From sequence record OP292654.1: 64,000 bases of DNA; one strand, written 5' to 3'. Below, one piece after another: positions 1 to 50,048 of this stretch (the stretch's first letter is position 1; each line of letters opens with the position of its first letter). The position numbers and the translations under genes were made by a program. The notes below the pieces were generated by a model. The model did not search any database, was not told where the DNA came from, and saw only the letters and a program-made list of their open reading frames with translations.

Positions 1-900
1 TATCTGTTCCTGAAGTCCAATGAAAATCTCAGTACTGAAAAATCTAGAACTCACTTCAGCTAAAATCTGAAAAGTACTCTATCCTAAATCTCGATTCTAG
101 AAATTTTGAAGTACCTTTGACCCTCCAGCCTAAATCTCAATAGTACTCGAAATCATTTCTGTACTAGACTATCTCCGAAAGAATATAGAACAAGATGTTG
201 TAACTACAGTTCGAACCACCAGCATATATGTGTATATGTACAGTACTGTAAATGTATCCAGTACTAGAAGAAATATGAAAATAGTGCTGAAAAGGGCTTG
301 ACGGTACGGGGGCGATAGGGTAATATACACACATGGTTCAGGAGGTGGTTAATAGCTGCCAGTACTGAAGCCTAGCCTGGTTGGTGTAGACTGCCTGGTG
401 ACTTGAACCCTCGTGTTCATAGTTTTTCCTCCTTTCTTGCGTTGCTTAGGAAATTGAGTACTAAGCGTATTTGAGTAGCACTTGATGCACTTCGACAGTA
501 CTAGTATTGTGTTCTTGTAAGGTAGATATACCCTAGAGAGTATAGTACTAGTACTGTTAACTTTTAATTGAGAGAGTCCAAGATACGGATACAATTATAG
601 TACTGTATTGGTATTCGATAGACGGATTTATCCCGTCTGCTGTCAGAAGATGGATAGACTTCTGGAAGTGTAGATAGCTGGATGTATAGACGTATAGACG
701 GCTATCCTTCTGGACGGCTAAAAGGCTAGATGGCTATCCGTCTAGATGGCTAGACGTTTAGACGGCTAAATGGTTTTTCTGTCATTTTTCCATTAGCTCC
801 CCTTCCGCGTCTGGTTAGTACCAGGCAGAATCGAAAGCTGTCTTTTCGTGTTGACGTGGTTATATTATCATAGTGAGAGATGAATGCAAGTACTTTTTTC
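1..900. repeat. Non-coding, AGTACT-dense segment with clustered short TAGA(C/T)GGCTA-like repeats (~615-780); possible genome-terminal region
   Basis: No credible ORF; 11 AGTACT sites counted by hand in the first ~605 bp; repeated TAGACGG/TAGATGG/GGCTA words. Confidence 0.6.
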
Positions 901-913
901 AATAAAAATAAAT

Positions 914-945
914 TTGACAGATGAATCCTGGTTATAGTACTATAT
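914..945 (+). promoter_or_regulatory. sigma70-type early promoter
   Basis: TTGACA 914-919; TACTAT 938-943. Confidence 0.75.
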
Positions 946-952
946 CCACACA

Positions 953-993
953 CCAGCGAAATGGGCGACCCTAGAGGGTGGCAAGATCCGTCC
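953..993 (+). ncRNA. Two-hairpin promoter-proximal element, copy 1
   Basis: CCA-GCGAAA-TGG then ACCC-TAGA-GGGT-GGCAAGATCCGTCC; repeated about 10 times in 0.9-16.3 kb. Confidence 0.6.
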
Positions 994-1013
994 GTAGTTT
1001 TTTATATGAATTT

Positions 1014-1059
1014 TGGACGCAATTCCCCACCCCCTGGGGTTCCCGCTTTCTCGCGTCTA
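1014..1059 (-). ncRNA. Two-hairpin element, inverted copy convergent with copy 1
   Basis: Minus strand reads TAGACGCGAGAAAGCGGGAACCCCAGGGGGTGGGGAATTGCGTCCA. Confidence 0.5.
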
Positions 1060-1066
1060 TGTAGTT

Positions 1067-1095
1067 ATTATGCCAGTACTGAGATCATAACGCAA
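1067..1095 (-). promoter_or_regulatory. Minus-strand sigma70 promoter
   Basis: TTGCGT-N17-CATAAT on the minus strand. Confidence 0.65.
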
Positions 1096-1439
1096 GGACT
1101 TTCGACAATCTTTACAAAACTTTTTAGCCCTTCTATATACGCAATATAAAGGCCGTACAGCGTACCAGGAGATTATGTGTCTTAGTACTGTTAAAGGGCT
1201 TAGAACGCGATACAGGAAACAGTAAGTGCATATAAGGAAGGAAAACGAGGATCGAAAGTATTTTAAAGAAAAAGTGAAATAGTCCTTGCATGGTTCATTG
1301 GTTATGATAGTATAGCTCCAACGACAAGAAACACCGCTCTTTAAAAACCTGGCATTCATTACTGAAACAAACATTTACGCGGTTTCGCGAAAAAGATTTG
1401 AGAAAGTACTTGACTGCTGGATTGAGTAGTGTAGAATGT

Positions 1440-1600
1440 CAATTATCGAAAGGCGGTCAGGTTCGCCGGATGATAGGAAACGGAAACAGGGCTAGAATAG
1501 ATAGTACTGTTTCAGCGTATGACCGGATAAGGCAACGTAGCGTTATAAAGGCTAACTAACTGTTAGCGTCCTATCTACCGCCTGGAGATAAACGAAAAAA
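1440..1600 (+). ncRNA. Candidate structured RNA or leader
   Basis: Nested pairings AGGCGGT 1451-57/ACCGCCT 1577-83 and GATAGGA 1472-78/TCCTATC 1569-75; hairpin GCTAAC/GTTAGC 1551-67; downstream of a TTGACT...TAGAAT promoter (~1410-1437). Confidence 0.4.
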
Positions 1601-1725
1601 AAGTTTCTCGAAAGTTGAAAAAGTCCTTGACCGAAAGAAACGAAATGTAGTAAGATGTAATCACTGAGACGCAAGAGCGAATCAGACAAACAAATTAATC
1701 AATCACTTTTAAGAAGGTACATATC

Positions 1726-2427
1726 ATGGCTAAATCTAACAAAACTGTTGTTGCTTCTTCTGTTGAAACTGCTGTTAAAGCTCCGAAAGTAACCCTGAAC
1801 AGCATCGTCCTGGCGACTACTCCGGCTCTGCCAGCCCTGCCGGAAGGTCAGACCGAGCACACTGCCGAAGTACTGGCACAATTTGAAAGCGACGTGACCG
1901 CGTTTGTCAATACTCAGGCTCAGGCACTGGCTGATTACCTGGTAGACAAGTCGGACAGCGTAGAAATCATTTCCCGCCTGCTGGGTGCGACTGTGACGCT
2001 GATCCCTGCGGTACTGGAACGCGAAGCGGAAAACATCGCTAAACGCAAAGCAGAACGCGAAGCGAACCGCAACGCCGCGAAAGCTCAGCGTGAAGCCGAA
2101 GCCGCTGCCGCTCAAAAGGCACTGGAAGAAGAGAAGAAAGCAATGCTGAAACTTCTGCTCGATTCAGGCATGGATCTGACGATGGCGAAAGCAGCGGTTG
2201 AAGCTGGTGCGAAAGCGAAACTGAAAGCGGCTGCGGCTCCGGTTGTGTCTTACGAGCGTGTGACCGTTGAATATAACGGCAAGCAGTACGAAATGCCGGT
2301 AAAAGGTAACATGGGTAACGAACTGAAAGCAATTCTCGCAGAAAGCAAGCTCGACCGCGACGACTTTATCAAGCAATACAAAGTCGAAACCGAAAGCAAC
2401 GCTGAAACCGAAAACGCTGGCGAATAA
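1726..2427 (+). CDS. Ala/Lys-rich coiled-coil protein, possible H-NS/MvaT-like nucleoid protein
   Basis: Strong SD (AAGAAGG), highly expressed-type codon use, long charged helix, C-terminal ...LAESKLDRDDFI; function is inferred. Confidence 0.85.
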   Translation: MAKSNKTVVASSVETAVKAPKVTLNSIVLATTPALPALPEGQTEHTAEVLAQFESDVTAFVNTQAQALADYLVDKSDSVEIISRLLGATVTLIPAVLEREAENIAKRKAEREANRNAAKAQREAEAAAAQKALEEEKKAMLKLLLDSGMDLTMAKAAVEAGAKAKLKAAAAPVVSYERVTVEYNGKQYEMPVKGNMGNELKAILAESKLDRDDFIKQYKVETESNAETENAGE

Positions 2428-2442
2428 TCCCACGGCGTAAAA

Positions 2443-2465
2443 TAAGGGGGCTAAATGCCCCCTTA
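2443..2465 (+). terminator. Intrinsic terminator-like hairpin
   Basis: TAAGGGGGC-TAAAT-GCCCCCTTA directly after the ORF. Confidence 0.65.
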
Positions 2466-2470
2466 AGCAC

Positions 2471-2514
2471 TTCTAACAGTACTGTAATACAATCGGGTAA
2501 CAGTACTGTTAGAA
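2471..2514. repeat. Perfect 15-bp inverted repeat with AGTACT in each arm
   Basis: TTCTAACAGTACTGT 2471-85 / ACAGTACTGTTAGAA 2500-14. Confidence 0.9.
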
Positions 2515-2572
2515 ACGCTTAGAATCAATCCTAGAGCGTTTTAGATACCCTTTTAATTGAGAGTAAACGCCT

Positions 2573-2842
2573 ATGGAACTTAAAGCAATATCAGACCTGA
2601 TTGATCCACGTACCAGGATCGCAAAGACAATGACGGCAACGGGGCCGCGTACTACAGAGTTTAGCGGCTATCTTGCCTTTGTAGTTGGTGGCGTACTGGT
2701 ACAGCGTCGGATCTATGATATGCCTTACAATCATCAATTTGATTCGTGTATGTATATCATTCACAAGAAAGTAAACTATGCCGTAAATCTTCCATGTAAG
2801 CCCATTAGCGGGGCTTTTAACGTAGAATCATTAAAGGCATAA
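2573..2842 (+). CDS. Hypothetical early protein
   Basis: ORF with GAGAG SD-like signal. Confidence 0.65.
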   Translation: MELKAISDLIDPRTRIAKTMTATGPRTTEFSGYLAFVVGGVLVQRRIYDMPYNHQFDSCMYIIHKKVNYAVNLPCKPISGAFNVESLKA

Positions 2843-2982
2843 GCTAACATACAAAACCCCTTAGAACTCGTCACATAGCGTTTTATAAGGGGTTTTATTT
2901 TTGCATCAAAAAAGTAAATTAGTACTTGCATAGTTCGTTCGAATATGGATAATAGAACTTATCGAAACGAGGAGAAACAAAA

Positions 2983-3645
2983 ATGAACTTATTTAAGTTA
3001 GAGCAATATAGAATGGTTCTGGAAGTACTGGAACAAATGAAAGATTGTTTAGACCGTGGCGAGACTTACACTAATGTTAAAGGCAAGCCGTTTAACGTTA
3101 CTCGTCAGTTTGGTATCTGCTGGCACGTATACGCCCATACGCCTAACCAAAAGATGACAGGGATCGGCACTGACTTTATGTGTGGTGCGTTCGCTGAAAT
3201 GGGGTTAGATTCTGCCTATCCGGTAGAGGGACAAAGTACTATCAATCGCGATCATATGCGTATTGCGTTCACTGCTCAGCGTAACTTGTACGACGACGAC
3301 ACGATCCACGGTGCGAACCGGATCAAGCTGGTGGACCGTCTGATTCAGTACTACCGCGAAAAGATGGAAACGCCTGTTAGTGAAACAATGTACCAGCATT
3401 ACTATAACCTTGCGTTATCAGAAATGAAATGGCGTGATACAGCTAACGAGGCTGTTTGGGATGTTCTGGATTTTGAGAACAATCAGATCTGGCCTAGCCT
3501 GGCCGCCTTGATTGTACAGGAAGATCCAACCCTGGGGGAAGTACTGGAAAACTCTGATATTAACTACCCGGACGATCTGACACTGGAAAACATTGTCACG
3601 ACTAACTTACAGGAACGGATTCAGGAAGCGTTAGAAAAGTTATAA
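2983..3645 (+). CDS. Hypothetical early protein
   Basis: GAGGAG SD, upstream promoter. Confidence 0.85.
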   Translation: MNLFKLEQYRMVLEVLEQMKDCLDRGETYTNVKGKPFNVTRQFGICWHVYAHTPNQKMTGIGTDFMCGAFAEMGLDSAYPVEGQSTINRDHMRIAFTAQRNLYDDDTIHGANRIKLVDRLIQYYREKMETPVSETMYQHYYNLALSEMKWRDTANEAVWDVLDFENNQIWPSLAALIVQEDPTLGEVLENSDINYPDDLTLENIVTTNLQERIQEALEKL

Positions 3646-3656
3646 TCTTTACAATT

Positions 3657-3692
3657 TAGGGCTTGACCGTTTCAAGCCCTATATAGTACTAT
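3657..3692 (+). promoter_or_regulatory. Terminator hairpin containing the -35 of the next promoter
   Basis: TAGGGCTTGA-CCGTT-TCAAGCCCTA followed by TAGTACTAT. Confidence 0.7.
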
Positions 3693-3724
3693 GTCAGTAC
3701 ACCAACAAACGGAGCAAAACGAAA

Positions 3725-4066
3725 ATGATGAGATTAAGCGAACTGAAAGGCGTACTTTTCCAACTGGAACAAATCGCACACAAAAGAGGGAACATTGATC
3801 CGATTGTGGAATTGTTCAACGATGATCTTTACGTTGAAGTAGATCTCCAGGCAATCGCAGATGATCCAGAAGGGCAATTGTTGCGTAACGGTACTATTCA
3901 CCTACCAACAAAAGAAATCGTGCGTCGTGGTTTCGCGATAACCTACGGCACGGATCGCGGCGAGGACTCAATCATAATTGACGCCGAAAGTAAAGCCCAG
4001 GCCGAACAATTATTCAAGAAACATTTTAGTTCATACGAATTAAAATTAGTCATCGAAGCAATGTAA
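3725..4066 (+). CDS. Hypothetical early protein
   Basis: GGAG SD, own promoter. Confidence 0.8.
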   Translation: MMRLSELKGVLFQLEQIAHKRGNIDPIVELFNDDLYVEVDLQAIADDPEGQLLRNGTIHLPTKEIVRRGFAITYGTDRGEDSIIIDAESKAQAEQLFKKHFSSYELKLVIEAM

Positions 4067-4080
4067 ATCTTTACAAAACA

Positions 4081-4120
4081 GGGGTTGACTTCGGTTAGCC
4101 CCTTATGTTAAAGTACTATC
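4081..4120 (+). promoter_or_regulatory. Terminator/promoter fusion with cUUCGg hairpin
   Basis: GGGGTTGAC-TTCG-GTTAGCCCC; TTGACT at 4085. Confidence 0.75.
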
Positions 4121-4123
4121 AAT

Positions 4124-4165
4124 CCAGCGAAATGGTCTAACCCACAAGGGTGGGAAGATCCGTCC
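4124..4165 (+). ncRNA. Two-hairpin element, copy 2
   Basis: CCA-GCGAAA-TGG; ACCC-ACAA-GGGT; GGGAAGATCCGTCC. Confidence 0.6.
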
Positions 4166-4185
4166 AGTGATTTTTATATGAATTT

Positions 4186-4230
4186 TAGACAGATCTTCCC
4201 ACTCTCTAGAGTCTCCCGTTTCGCCGGTAT
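4186..4230 (-). ncRNA. Two-hairpin element, inverted copy convergent with copy 2
   Basis: Minus strand: CCG-GCGAAA-CGG and ACTC-TAGA-GAGT (compensatory changes); promoter TTGCTT-N17-CATAAT at 4237-4265. Confidence 0.6.
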
Positions 4231-4329
4231 GTGGTAATTATGCCAGTACTGAAAAAGAAAAGCAAGGAAAAAGAATCGAAAAAAAGTAATTAAATCGCTT
4301 GATCGGTTCTGTGGTTATGATAATATAGC

Positions 4330-4645
4330 TACATCGAAACGACACGGCGAGCCGCCAAAGGAGTTAAGATTTGAACCATCAGGCTGATATCCTGGTGGCA
4401 GTACGTAGAACCCTAAGACGTATAGCGAACCAATAAGACTATACCAGGAATCACAAAGCGAAAGCACATCTATAAGGTGATTGTGATTAGTACTGAAAGA
4501 TTATCAGGTACTTAATAAATTAAACAAACTACTTATTAAATAGCCGCGTAGGTGTGAAGTTCTAATATCGCATTCGTGCCGTGTTAGACGTTCCGAAAGG
4601 AAACCGATTCACCAATTAATGCCCCTCATGCCAGGGGCATTTTTT
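4330..4645 (+). ncRNA. Candidate ~300-nt structured RNA with its own promoter and terminator
   Basis: ACACGGC 4342-48/GCCGTGT 4578-84; TCCTGGT/ACCAGGA; AATCACAA/TTGTGATT; TTCC-GAAA-GGAA 4591-4602; terminator 4618-4645. Confidence 0.55.
4618..4645 (+). terminator. Intrinsic terminator
   Basis: AATGCCCCT/AGGGGCATT plus T-run. Confidence 0.85.
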
Positions 4646-4745
4646 GTTTTAAAATAAAGTAAATTAAAACGAGATAGTACTTGATCATAAATGTGTATGC
4701 TGTATAATTACCTATATCGAAACAGCACTATTAAGGATTTAAAAA

Positions 4746-5567: not shown

Positions 5568-5623
5568 TCTTTACAAAAGAGGGGTTGACTATTCAATCCC
5601 TTTTATAGTATTATGTATTCACT

Positions 5624-5665
5624 CCAGCGAAATGGACTAACCCTATAGGGTGGCTAAATGCGTCC
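5624..5665 (+). ncRNA. Two-hairpin element, copy 3
   Basis: TCCA-GCGAAA-TGGA; ACCC-TATA-GGGT; follows hairpin-promoter at 5581. Confidence 0.6.
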
Positions 5666-5758
5666 TGAAAATATTATAAATTAAATCGCAAATAGTACTT
5701 GCTTTGTTTGTTGGTTATGGTAATATCTTTATATCAGATACTCTTTGAGGTTAAGAAA

Positions 5759-6340
5759 ATGCGTTACTGGAAAAACTTTGTTAATAGCTTACACAATAGA
5801 ACCAATGATGAAATTATTTCTATGTGTAAATCTGCTGGTCTACAACAATTAGGCAAAGTTAACAAATGGTCTAGTAGAATTGTATTTGCTATAAATGATA
5901 ATTGGGTTATCAAAATCTGTCTATCCGAAATTGGGGTAGAACAAAATGAATGCGAATACCGGTTATGGGATTCTTTAAGTATCGGATGCGAACATTATAA
6001 AAAGTACTTTGCTAAACTTTATCCTGAAATGTGTGATACTGTTGAATATCGTTTTATTGTTATGCAACGTTTAACTAATAGTACTGAAACAAAGAAAGGG
6101 TTAATAGCAGCCGCGAAACGCTATAGCCCAAATACAAAAAAATTCCGTAATGCTATAAAAGATATTGATTTACATTCTGATTTGTGTAACGAGGGAGACA
6201 TTAAAGCATCTAATTTAGGTAAGGATAAAAACGGAAAAATCAAGCTGTTAGACTATGGCTGTAGTCGTAAAGTGGTAAATGCTTTTTATCGGGCACGGTG
6301 GAATAATGACACTGCGAAAGTAATAAAAACTACAATTTAA
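5759..6340 (+). CDS. Hanks-type/PKL-fold protein kinase-like protein
   Basis: Motifs in order: SSRIVF, WVIKI, alphaC E, DIKASNLG, KLLDYG; start moved to ATG 5759 after GAGG. Confidence 0.75.
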   Translation: MRYWKNFVNSLHNRTNDEIISMCKSAGLQQLGKVNKWSSRIVFAINDNWVIKICLSEIGVEQNECEYRLWDSLSIGCEHYKKYFAKLYPEMCDTVEYRFIVMQRLTNSTETKKGLIAAAKRYSPNTKKFRNAIKDIDLHSDLCNEGDIKASNLGKDKNGKIKLLDYGCSRKVVNAFYRARWNNDTAKVIKTTI

Positions 6341-7377: not shown

Positions 7378-7433
7378 AGTACTAAAAATAGGGGTTGACT
7401 TCGGTTAGCCCTTTGTAGTATTATGTAATCACT

Positions 7434-7475
7434 CCAGCGAAATGGACTAACCCTATAGGGTGGCAAGATCCGTCC
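7434..7475 (+). ncRNA. Two-hairpin element, copy 4 (consensus)
   Basis: CCAGCGAAATGGACTAACCCTATAGGGTGGCAAGATCCGTCC after hairpin-promoter at 7391. Confidence 0.6.
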
Positions 7476-7650
7476 AAAAAAAAGTTATAAATTAAAATGA
7501 AAATAGTACTTGCTTTGTTTGTTCAATGTGGTAATATGTATCACATGGAAGGGCAAGTGAGGATAAAGAAATGAGTCGTAAAGTAGAGTTTCTTTTGTTT
7601 ATCTTTATTGTTATAATGCTATCTGTCGAATTTAATTAAGAGGATATATC

Positions 7651-8367: not shown

Positions 8368-8424
8368 AACATAAAGTACTGGTGAAATATCCAGTACTGT
8401 TTTTATGTACAGCATTATAATTTT

Positions 8425-8470
8425 TAGACGCATCTTGCCACCCTCTGGGGTTCCCGCGTTCTCGCGTCTA
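8425..8470 (-). ncRNA. Two-hairpin element, stand-alone minus-strand copy
   Basis: TAGACGC...ACCC-CAGA-GGGT-GGCAAGAT-GCGTCTA on the minus strand; no downstream ORF on that strand. Confidence 0.6.
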
Positions 8471-8477
8471 TGTAGTA

Positions 8478-13006: not shown

Positions 13007-13057
13007 GAAAATAAAGGGTTGACTTCGGTTAGCCCTTTTTGCTATACTGTATTCAAT

Positions 13058-13100
13058 CCAGCGAAATGGACTAACCCTATAGGGTGGCAAGTTGCGTCCA
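13058..13100 (+). ncRNA. Two-hairpin element, copy 6
   Basis: TCCA-GCGAAA-TGGA; ACCC-TATA-GGGT; follows hairpin-promoter at 13013. Confidence 0.6.
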
Positions 13101-13251
13101 ATGGATTTTAGTACTAGAAAGTACTGTATAAATGAACAGGTAATTATTTTTAAATTAAAACGTGAATAGTACTTGCGTTATTCATCCAGTACTGTATAAT
13201 CTTTTACATGGATTAGGGAATGGCCTTAATCATTTAAGCGAGAATATCAAA

Positions 13252-13827: not shown

Positions 13828-14244
13828 AAATAATTAATAACAGGGATTGACTAGTTCAATCCCTTTTGCTATTCTATCAGTACTGAAACAGAGGATAGCA
13901 ACATGAAAAAGAAATATGTAGTTGAGTACACAGAAGAAAGTTTAGCACACGTAGAAGCTAAACATATGGAAGATATTTTAGGCCTGGCTATTAGTACAGT
14001 ACTTTCCTTTATCCTGGTATTCTGCTAATGCGTGAACTTAAATCATTCAGAAACGGCAAAGTTAGATTGTATTCCAATCGCGGAGTACTCACACTTAACC
14101 ACGCAGATATTAATAACTGTACTATGACATTTGTCAAGCCCTGGTATGCTCTTTATTATTACAGCCAGGCAGTTACAAAAGAAATGAAATCATTTGCATA
14201 AAGGGCTTGACACAATAAGCCCTTATTGATATACTGTTATCAAT

Positions 14245-14287
14245 CAGGCGAAACTGACTAACCCTATAGGGTGGCGTAGTGTATTCA
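14245..14287 (+). ncRNA. Two-hairpin element, copy 7 (3' end degenerate)
   Basis: TCAG-GCGAAA-CTGA; ACCC-TATA-GGGT. Confidence 0.55.
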
Positions 14288-14409
14288 AAATCTATTAGTA
14301 CTGGATACATGTACAGTAATTATTTTTAAATTAAAACGTGAATAGTACTTGCATTCAAACGTCCATAGTATATAATGAAGTTATTGAAACAGCACTGGAG
14401 CAAAACAAA

Positions 14410-16223: not shown

Positions 16224-16273
16224 TTCAGAAAGGGGTTGACTTCGGTCAGCCCTTTTGTTATAGTACTATCAAT

Positions 16274-16315
16274 GCGGCGAAACGCACTAACCCTCTAGGG
16301 TGGCAAGATCCGTCC
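16274..16315 (+). ncRNA. Two-hairpin element, copy 8
   Basis: TGCG-GCGAAA-CGCA; ACCC-TCTA-GGGT; GGCAAGATCCGTCC. Confidence 0.6.
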
Positions 16316-16407
16316 AAAAAATAATATAAATTAAATCGTAAAAAGTACTTGCTTTCTTCCGCTGGTGGACATATACTTAACACATAAACCAACACGAGGG
16401 CACGAAC

Positions 16408-25695: not shown

Positions 25696-26014
25696 ATTGA
25701 AGTTCATTAATGATGCTCCTAAGTACATATGGTTAGGCAAACGTGGGAAACCTCGTATTGCTGAAGAAGTAGAATTCCATGATGGAAGTACTATATACAT
25801 TTCGGATGCTCCTAACTACAAGGCTGCGATGGAACGTATTTTTAATTCATCAATTCAGATGGATGAAAATAGTGCTGCGAAGTACATGTTCGCCCTGGCT
25901 CATGTGATGGATGATGAAGATGAAGATAATTTCTATCTGCTATTGACAGACTTCAGCGAATGGCATACAATGCTAAGTACAGATTATTCCGACACAAAAG
26001 ATGAAACGGAATAA
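25685..26014 (+). CDS. Hypothetical protein
   Basis: Coupled ORF. Confidence 0.75.
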   Translation: MKRKLKFINDAPKYIWLGKRGKPRIAEEVEFHDGSTIYISDAPNYKAAMERIFNSSIQMDENSAAKYMFALAHVMDDEDEDNFYLLLTDFSEWHTMLSTDYSDTKDETE

Positions 26015-49504: not shown

Positions 49505-49957
49505 ATGGCTACAAATGATCAATACACTCTAGGATATACGTTCTTTCAGGACAAACGAAATGAACCTCTAACTCCTGAAGCATTAAAACAAATGCATCCG
49601 TTCTTCCGTCGCGGTTATCGTACTGCTCAGGAAGATCAAATGAAGAAGAATAATCAAAACTTCCCATTTGTTCTTTCTGAGATTCCGACTCGTGGGGAAG
49701 TATTTGTACCGGATTGGAACGATATTCTGGCGGCAACACGCCGTCCACGTTTCGCTAAGCTACATAATATCCCTGCTCTGGCTCCAGTACTAAATGAGCT
49801 AATCAAGGCTGTAGAAAATAACAAAGACAAAATTCGCCGTTACTCAGATGTTATACGTATGGTTGATGAAGGATTTGATATTATTCTTCAGTACGGATAT
49901 GATAGTGGTATCCTAGATGAACATGATCTCAGTAAGTACAATTACGTACCGAAATAA
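49505..49957 (+). CDS. Hypothetical protein
   Basis: ORF. Confidence 0.75.
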   Translation: MATNDQYTLGYTFFQDKRNEPLTPEALKQMHPFFRRGYRTAQEDQMKKNNQNFPFVLSEIPTRGEVFVPDWNDILAATRRPRFAKLHNIPALAPVLNELIKAVENNKDKIRRYSDVIRMVDEGFDIILQYGYDSGILDEHDLSKYNYVPK

Positions 49958-50048
49958 TCTTAAAGGCTGCTGGATATGATAGTGGTATCCTAGATGAACA
50001 TGATCTCAGTAAGTACAATTACGTACCGAAATAATCTTAAAGGCTGCT
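49895..50048. repeat. Perfect 77-bp tandem duplication (probable assembly artefact)
   Basis: 49895-49971 is identical to 49972-50048. Confidence 0.95.

Follow-up and report, generated by a model that had tools for sequence, protein, structure and literature searches.

We analysed the first 64 kb of the 367,901-bp genome of phage XbC2 (OP292654.1), a Rak2-like jumbo phage of the genus Mimasvirus, and found in these 64,000 nucleotides (hereafter referred to as the window) a family of ten ~50-nt structured elements that begin at the predicted starts of sigma70-type promoters. Four of the copies form two convergent pairs, at positions 914-1095 (pair A) and 4081-4265 (pair B), with one element per strand. 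The initial annotation of this DNA had taken the two loci as the setting of the element; both loci are real, but the element is a ten-copy family in the window, mostly placed in tandem upstream of genes, and neither this family, nor the conservation of the pairs across genera, nor the PeSL type of the plus-strand promoter cassette had been part of that description. We tentatively favour the reading that the element marks a multi-copy early small RNA (sRNA) acting in trans, and that each pair represents two such genes placed face to face. Judged from sequence, the transcribed element and the covarying fold that it adopts appear new relative to Rfam and the literature found, as do the conserved pairs; the general kind, a phage early structured non-coding RNA (ncRNA) or leader, is known.

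An element family with a covarying fold

A covariance model built from the seven plus-strand copies of the window recovered all ten copies (E 1e-6 to 1e-26; seven on the plus and three on the minus strand), and a scan of the 64 kb with the filters off returned nothing beyond these ten, with zero copies in 17-64 kb. The 5' motif CCAGCGAAATGG.C.A.CC occurred five times in the window vs 0.05 expected. The same model detected ~40 further copies in Kaldavass, pEa_SNUABM_12, fHe-Yen9-04, CBB, fENko-Kae01, Muenster, XaC1 and GAP32, and additional copies were present in uncultivated viral contigs of ~371 kb.

The predicted RNA comprises 5'-A.., a first helix (H1), a linker of 2-4 nt, a second helix (H2), a G and a ~12-nt tail ending in UCY. 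H1 consists of a 3-5 bp stem, with at least 12 different stem sequences, and an invariant G[C/A]GAAA loop; none of its three inner pairs had an unpaired cell, each showed 9-16 double changes, and the covariation of H1 reached 0.364 vs 0.105 in shuffled alignments (0/500) and ~0.02-0.03 in slid controls. H2 (ACCC-N3-4-GGGU) is 100% paired and includes the compensated variants ACUC/GAGU and ACCU/AGGU, and RNAalifold independently yielded H1 plus H2. Given that the H1 arms are variable yet always paired, the data point to an RNA (or single-strand) hairpin and not to a protein site on duplex DNA. An alternative helix, H3, which joins GGGUGN to the tail (NNRYCY), is 90.5% paired on columns that are unpaired in the model; its changes are almost exclusively G-C/G-U and U-G/U-A, with covariation at the innermost pair. 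Since both use GGGU, H2 and H3 exclude each other, and in many copies the two are close in energy. H3 is thereby a plausible, though not an established, alternative helix.

Several further candidates were tried and rejected. An outer helix around H2 (GGAC/GUCC or AGACGC/GCGUCU), taken from minimum-free-energy folds of single sequences, is absent with CGCA or UGUCU H1 strands, and a third hairpin confined to the tail has no register common to the copies, the H3 pairing that uses GGGUGN fitting better. A mini open reading frame inside H1 (AUG-GAC-UAA), CTAACCCTATAGGG as a T3/T7 promoter-like sequence, CGAGAGAAAUCG as a sarcin-ricin-loop mimic, complementarity of the tail to the 16S 3' end and a loop-tail pseudoknot were all not conserved across copies.

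The element is tightly linked to promoters. A sigma70-type promoter of at least 8/12 ends 4-6 nt ahead of the model start in 49/50 copies from 8 genomes, compared with 14% of random positions, and at a threshold of at least 9/12 the figures are 41/50 copies vs 4%; all ten window copies have CA at the predicted -1/+1. This fixed register favours a function at the RNA rather than the DNA level. Plus-strand copies mostly follow a promoter whose -35 lies inside the GC hairpin that closes the upstream gene, and this promoter/terminator cassette is of a known kind, namely the PeSL, a composite terminator/promoter cassette of T4-like phages (Arbiol 2010, PMC2839356; Comeau 2014, PMC4122927). GC hairpins of the GGGGTTGACTTCGGTTAGCCCC type follow genes 4, 7, 11, 25, 27 and 31, where they serve as terminators, and the promoters fused to such hairpins (TTGAC[AT]-N17-18-TAnnnT) are near-consensus sigma70 promoters scoring 9-11/12. 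The plus promoter of pair A and the minus promoters are without the PeSL hairpin.

The likeness to PeSL allows a reading without any RNA function, in which the element is an extension of PeSL-type repeats that serves module shuffling, and the pairs are relics of insertion or inversion. The upstream part of the cassette (GC hairpin with the -35, then the -10) fits the PeSL design, a query beginning with the cassette matches T4-like Vibrio phages over 41-59 nt (PMC4122927, PMC2839356), and a PeSL remnant lies to the right of pair A (1112-1145). However, the H1 stem varies in sequence yet is always paired, a constraint not needed for recombination driven by homology; individual loci keep their copies from genus to genus despite non-aligning flanking DNA; and 60-75% identity over 50 nt makes a poor substrate. 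We therefore regard the recombination reading as improbable.

The copies occur in three contexts. The seven plus-strand copies of the window stand in tandem context, between a PeSL-type promoter and a gene. Tandem-class copies, all on the plus strand, lie at 5619-5670 (PeSL-type promoter 5585-5614 upstream; a second putative promoter, TTGCTT-N16-TAATAT at 5699-5726, and gene 8 downstream), at 7429-7480 (the best-scoring copy; promoter 7395-7424 upstream and a second putative promoter 7510-7537 downstream), at 16269-16320 (H1 UGCG/CGCA) and at 13053-13104 and 14240-14291, the latter with a diverged tail. Across genomes, a second promoter-like motif (AGT[AC]CTTG..., extended -10) is present 22-63 nt downstream of 20/24 tandem copies and never within 100 nt downstream of pair or lone copies. 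The pairs, described below, form the second context. The third is a lone minus-strand unit, in which a perfect TTGACA-N17-TATAAT promoter (8506-8478; 12/12) is followed by the element (8421-8471), a spacer rich in A and U and then a hairpin (AGTACTGG...CCAGTACT, 8375-8398) that forms a bidirectional terminator and would end the RNA at ~95 nt (z -3.15). The element is the sole conserved structured domain of this unit, and its promoter, element and CAGTACTGG hairpin are shared with Kaldavass, pEa_SNUABM_12 and fHe-Yen9-04; among these three relatives the U-rich tail of the hairpin is found only in Kaldavass and pEa_SNUABM_12. An own promoter together with an own terminator and no open reading frame is thus the property of the lone unit, plausibly of the minus copy of pair B, and not of the tandem copies, which lack the terminator.

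Searches for relatives of the element were largely negative. Rfam 15 gave no match at the gathering threshold across the whole window, and a permissive Rfam scan of 850-1150 returned only microRNA-precursor models at 14-22 bits (gathering 84-107) and PreQ1 at 12 bits (gathering 39); transfer RNA and transfer-messenger RNA were likewise not found in the window. No blastn match to the element was obtained in 5,426 genomes of E. coli, and an exact-pattern scan of 185,579 bacterial and archaeal species genomes yielded 54 single hits, about the chance estimate, none of which exceeded 21 bits with the model, so that these scans produced no convincing copy in cellular genomes. The element is also absent from the right end of the XbC2 record and from ncRNA001 of the Rak2-related jumbo phage PA5oct. 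The promoters described for CBB are sigma70-like, TGAAACG-type and late, and the element is absent from that description (PMC5259590).

Two conserved convergent pairs

At each of the two loci, a plus and a minus sigma70-type promoter oppose each other, and every motif that the initial annotation had named there is in place. Pair A opens with a plus promoter at 914-943 (TTGACA 914-919, N18, TACTAT 938-943; A/T-rich upstream; predicted +1 A950) that leads into the plus element at 948-998 (63.8 bits, E 2e-19; H1 CCA/GCGAAA/UGG, H2 ACCC-UAGA-GGGU, tail ..CCGUCC). After an inter-copy spacer (999-1009) that is T-rich on the plus strand come the minus element at 1010-1060 (28 bits, E 4e-7 to 1e-6; H1 CGC/GAGAAA/GCG, H2 ACCC-CAGG-GGGU) and its promoter at 1067-1095 (TTGCGT-N17-CATAAT, TGn extended -10, CAGTACTG in the spacer; predicted +1 A1060). 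Pair B has a PeSL-type plus promoter at 4081-4114 (TTGACT 4085-4090; -10 TAAAGT 4109-4114), a plus element at 4119-4170 (68.9 bits, E 3e-21), a minus element at 4182-4232 (45.9 bits, E 5e-13; compensated H2 variant ACUC/GAGU) and a minus promoter at 4237-4265 (TTGCTT-N17-CATAAT, TGn extended -10). The claim of one element per strand at each locus is thus borne out by four covariance-model matches (E 1e-6 to 3e-21). The same applies to the duplicated unit, in that TATGCCAGTACTGA is found at both loci and equals the reverse complement of the minus promoter's CAGTACTG plus -10 region, and to the conserved spacer TTTTTATATGAATTTT, also found at both. The predicted distance from +1 to +1 is ~110-113 nt in both pairs.

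That no open reading frame lies between the promoters is correct for the annotated coding sequences of OP292654.1, but a mechanical 62-aa open reading frame spans 961-1149. In relatives, small coding sequences annotated as 'hypothetical protein' overlap the pairs by coordinates, in Kaldavass and, as CBB_7, in CBB (L012 9188-9376; L015 3793-3966). These tiny calls over the pairs are probably spurious, covering RNA elements and not genes.

Transcript ends can be proposed for some of the copies. H3 followed by a U-run was flagged at 976-993 and 4148-4165, and the U-run is missing after tandem copies, minus copies and the plus copies of Eneladusvirus pairs; for the plus RNA of pair A, the spacer 999-1009 with the possible H3 (976-993) looks like a weak intrinsic terminator. 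The GGGGTTGACTTCGGTTAGCCCC hairpin after gene 4 contains the -35 of the plus promoter of pair B. Read on the minus strand, this hairpin is followed by UGUUUUG and would be reached by the minus RNA of pair B after ~160 nt, making it a possible terminator for that RNA.

The pairs are syntenic, two per genome, and flank the first gene module (genes 1-4 in XbC2). XbC2, Kaldavass, pEa_SNUABM_12, fHe-Yen9-04 and CBB carry both; GAP32 carries pair A plus the minus copy of pair B; and XaC1, fENko-Kae01 and Muenster carry pair A, with a diverged partner recognised by eye. Inversion of the gene 1-4 module between the pairs was considered and rejected, as all genomes keep one orientation. Erwinia phage Kaldavass is 90% identical to window positions 600-4700 (90% coverage of the 4.1-kb query). 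Pair A lies ~1 kb from the left end wherever records start at the repeat boundary (CBB, fENko-Kae01, Muenster, XaC1 and XbC2). Because the long direct terminal repeats of relatives begin at record position 1 (22.4 kb in CBB, 19.7 kb in fENko-Kae01 and 20.0 kb in Muenster), the region studied here is most likely the early terminal-repeat region of XbC2. Annotated genes in its first 20 kb are all on the plus strand and all hypothetical. Window positions 600-4700 match the XbC2 record once, at 100% identity and at the same coordinates, and therefore the second repeat copy seems not to be included in the record.

The initial annotation had further proposed that read-through RNA folds into a long hairpin, and such RNA is indeed predicted to do so (-46 to -55 kcal/mol, z -4 to -8.6; GGGTGGGAAGATC/GATCTTCCCACTC at 4148-4204). 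Selection for this inter-copy hairpin was examined and rejected: the partners of a pair are 59-67% alike, compared with an average of 58-75% for unrelated copies in the same genome, and each partner keeps its own, different, internally paired H1 stem. Because the partners are not extra-alike and have separate H1 stems, the long hairpin is a by-product of placing family members head to head, although it would, as modelled, still form in any read-through RNA. The proposals that the loci are selected to generate double-stranded RNA or to extrude a cruciform are both unsupported by this comparison, and the further ideas of an RNA polymerase sink and of a role in staged DNA entry likewise found no support in the present analysis. 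A DNA-level signal, in which the ~110-bp imperfect palindrome acts as a cruciform or protein site in DNA entry, packaging or fork arrest, could draw on the long inverted repeat and on the conserved position of pair A, ~1 kb from the left terminal-repeat end in the same five phages. Its arms, however, are only ~60-67% alike and no closer than non-partners, 7/10 copies lie outside palindromes, and every copy is in fixed register with a promoter (the 49/50 across 8 genomes at the 8/12 threshold). We consider this explanation very improbable, and both it and the recombination-relic reading fit the H1 covariation and the partner similarity poorly.

The spacing of the promoters bears on another alternative, control of replication priming, in which promoter, structured RNA and AT-rich DNA would together form an R-loop origin like T4 oriF, oriG or oriE and the pairs would resemble the ColE1 RNA II/RNA I arrangement of primer and antisense inhibitor. 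The promoters of ColE1 RNA I and RNA II face each other ~110 nt apart, as do the predicted start sites of both pairs. AT-rich DNA follows every copy, pair A lies ~200 bp from iteron-like repeats (620-770) in a block ~78% conserved across genera and ~1 kb from the left physical end, and T4-like replication proteins are carried by these phages (PMC5259590). Against this, ten copies per genome are many for origins, and what follows tandem copies is AT-rich as the upstream region of the next promoter. The two RNAs of a pair share their 5' module, unlike RNA I and RNA II, and T4 origin transcripts require, to our knowledge, no specific RNA fold. We give little credence to primer control.

Several features of the surrounding non-coding DNA were recorded. 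About ten iteron-like repeats (TAGACGGCT / TAGATGGCT) occupy 620-770 within a non-coding block (~629-990) that retains ~78% identity in phages of Eneladusvirus, equally far from the start of the record and with little else aligning; the repeat block is a candidate site for packaging or for an origin close to the left physical end. The sequence at 1112-1145, ATCTTTACAAAAC-TTTTTAGCCCTT-CTATATAC, resembles a PeSL cassette minus the 5' half of its hairpin, and the motif TAATCTTTACAAA is also found upstream of several intact cassettes, overlapping the upstream stop codon. From pair A to gene 1 (1100-1725), ~620 nt are without an annotated coding sequence and contain three tandem promoter-like sites (~1285, 1410 and 1627); pEa_SNUABM_12 and CBB have a gap about as long, with one small coding sequence (CBB_2) annotated there. 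Beyond pair B, 4297-4645 is also without an annotated coding sequence and holds a promoter (CTTGAT..TAATAT, ~4297-4327) and a strong terminator (4618-4641) with a T-run, features that make it a candidate for a ~320-nt ncRNA. pEa_SNUABM_12 and CBB have no room for this candidate, their next gene beginning ~60-140 nt after pair B. A 184-nt contig from a possibly-RNA run, whose depth of 64.8 is the highest in that run, maps to 4345-4528 in this non-coding stretch.

A possible trans-acting small RNA or cis-acting leader

On the reading that we favour, an early sRNA acting in trans, each unit would be a sigma70-type early promoter used by the host RNA polymerase, followed by a ~50-nt structured RNA from +1, and the RNA would be made from the terminal-repeat region in the first minutes of infection. 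The element would be the functional domain of this RNA, acting in trans and most likely bound by a protein, as a decoy or a regulator; protein binding is favoured because the conserved parts are loops and short helices and not a long single-stranded seed. In the pairs, each RNA would either stop in the spacer or continue into the antisense of its partner, and reading into the partner would give mutually antisense RNAs and a read-through hairpin that RNase III could trim. The face-to-face placing may in this way limit and end both transcripts through collision, antisense pairing and hairpin processing, with the duplex or cruciform as a consequence and not the product under selection. A trans-acting sRNA is favoured because the lone unit is stand-alone, the loops are conserved and many copies sit behind the strongest early promoters. 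RNA sequencing of PA5oct, in which abundant ncRNAs from the long terminal repeat make up 2-5% of phage reads (PMC7318152), also counts in favour of an early sRNA. The earlier idea of dedicated sRNA cassettes fits the own promoters, the H1 compensation and the lone promoter-element-terminator unit, and the functional part of it is what we infer.

The following observations weigh against this reading. The model itself fitted the alignment used for covariation to H1/H2, individual copies show no unusual stability (z -0.4 to -2), and H3 is weak in several copies. The seven tandem plus copies have no terminator ahead of the next gene, and their RNA may be an mRNA 5' leader. The second promoter after 20/24 tandem copies could be of a middle type, in which case the first transcript is still possibly an mRNA and a cis-acting leader stays compatible with the data. 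Early proteins 1-10 gave no informative family except a weak kinase-like match of gene 8, and the public runs containing the region are wastewater- or metagenome-type contigs of relatives at depth 1-15, which carry no strand or end information.

The main rival is accordingly a cis-acting 5' leader, in which the element would protect the 5' end, work as an H2/H3 switch or serve as a put/nut-like antiterminator with which early transcripts could pass the hairpin terminators, with the minus copies leading into long antisense RNAs. The element begins at +1, with H1 2-5 nt from the 5' end, 7/10 copies lie upstream of co-directed genes with no intervening terminator, a hairpin ends nearly every early gene, and the mutually exclusive H2 and H3 have comparable energies in many copies; HK022 put and lambda nut are likewise promoter-proximal RNAs. 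Read-through is not required, however, because promoters occur every 1-4 genes, and 20/24 tandem copies have a further putative promoter before the gene. Moreover, three conserved minus copies per genome have no downstream gene, and 2/3 of those in the window reach a terminator-like hairpin within 100-160 nt; the element also has no boxA-like sequence and no Rfam match. The gene-less minus copies and the promoter density weaken the leader, which we regard as possible but, on balance, doubtful.

One contig from a possibly-RNA run carries the sequence of the copy at 16269. It extends from the upstream gene across the promoter and the element and stops exactly after ..CCGTCC, the 3' end of the element, followed by 23 A. 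Oligo-dT priming is the likely cause of this end because the genome has an A-run at that copy; the alternative is a polyadenylated 3' end at the element boundary.

A bolder form of the trans-acting sRNA reading, which we think rather unlikely, is that the element defines a new class of early regulatory RNA, a bistable (H2/H3) ~50-nt module that would be made from ~10 strong terminal-repeat promoters immediately upon DNA entry and would capture a host or phage protein, with the pairs making element and antisense as a timer or neutraliser. If true, the captured protein could be, e.g., a transcription factor, a nuclease of a defence system or a factor of RNA decay. Rak2-like jumbo phages of Klebsiella, E. 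coli, Erwinia, Yersinia, Cronobacter and Pectobacterium are under study for therapy and biocontrol, and their ~20-kb terminal repeats are full of early genes without an assigned role; no regulatory RNA in these repeats was described in the literature found. A covarying family that starts at +1 behind the strongest early promoters and occupies matching loci in different genera offers a cheap and concrete handle on the first minutes of infection, in that it predicts exact 5' ends and supplies a 50-nt bait for pull-down experiments together with natural compensatory variants.

The wider region and known systems

Further observations concern the phage and the window as a whole. The recorded host of XbC2 is Xanthomonas vesicatoria, its closest relative (90% identity) infects Erwinia aphidicola, and the hosts of all its other relatives are Enterobacterales. 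The XbC2 record closes (357194-367543) with a block of structural-type genes on the minus strand, the first start codon of which lies 358 bp from the end; in a concatemer, or given a terminal repeat on the right, pair A would have its minus promoter pointing at this block over ~1.45 kb, and Kaldavass has the same neighbourhood as this record-end block. Gene 8 (5759-6340) gave its protein-kinase-like match at E 0.0017, below the Pfam cut-off, and putative kinases are annotated in the terminal repeats of relatives. Repeat families of the form TG[GA]AACG-N-TG.TATAATG at 25996, 28738, 36650, 52700 and 62307 fit the 'TGAAACG instead of TTGACA' promoter class reported in CBB and GAP32. A 77-nt unit is perfectly duplicated in tandem at 49895-50048.

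Short palindromes are unevenly used in the window. AGTACT occurs 257 times vs ~21 expected from base composition, the next most frequent 6-bp palindrome occurs 51 times, and CCCGGG, CCATGG, CAGCTG, AGCGCT and ACGCGT have zero occurrences. CAGTACTG occurs 52 times, in promoter spacers beside the -10, at the +1 of PeSL-type promoters (TATCAGTACTGAAAC), immediately before the -35 in the second promoter type (AGTACTTGC) and as part of terminator stems (8375-8398). A regulator site or a structural motif are possible roles.

Known systems share parts of this arrangement. Phage RNA decoys, such as the pseudo-ToxI mimics of type III antitoxins and RNA anti-CRISPRs, are multi-copy short structured RNAs that bind a host protein, and the element resembles them in being short, structured, multi-copy and placed behind strong promoters in non-coding phage DNA. 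It differs in that its copies are dispersed rather than tandem, in that it has no Rfam match and in that no host counterpart was found by exact pattern in the 185,579 species genomes. HK022 put, with two stem-loops, and lambda nut, with its boxB hairpin, are similar as small stem-loops just downstream of early promoters, and the G[C/A]GAAA loop of H1 recalls the GAAAA/GAAGA of boxB. No boxA-like CUCUUUA is present in the element, its H1 and H2 are much shorter than the stems of put, there is no sequence or model match, and ~10 copies per genome compare with two in those phages, some of the present ones being without a downstream gene. ColE1 and pR/pL of coliphage 186 have convergent promoters over ~60-110 bp, with antisense 5' regions and transcriptional interference. 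The pairs share with them two converging promoters and mutually antisense 5' regions, but here both transcripts start with the same structured module, and a lytic jumbo phage carries two such pairs in each genome.

The ncRNA001 and ncRNA002 of PA5oct offer a parallel, as abundant non-coding RNAs from the direct terminal repeat of a related jumbo phage, although they are 236-451 nt long and ncRNA001, the only one compared, is without an element match. PeSL has a similar design, in that here too a GC stem-loop ends a gene, is fused to an early promoter and is repeated between genes of a plastic early region, and a cassette-first query matches KVP40/nt-1-like Vibrio phages over its first 41-59 nt. 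The published motif is a terminator plus a promoter, whereas in XbC2 and its relatives a transcribed stretch of ~50 nt, with a hairpin that covaries and loops that do not change, is added, some copies stand behind other promoter types, and the head-to-head pairs are conserved. The concept of the PeSL promoter/terminator cassette thereby gains a transcribed module.

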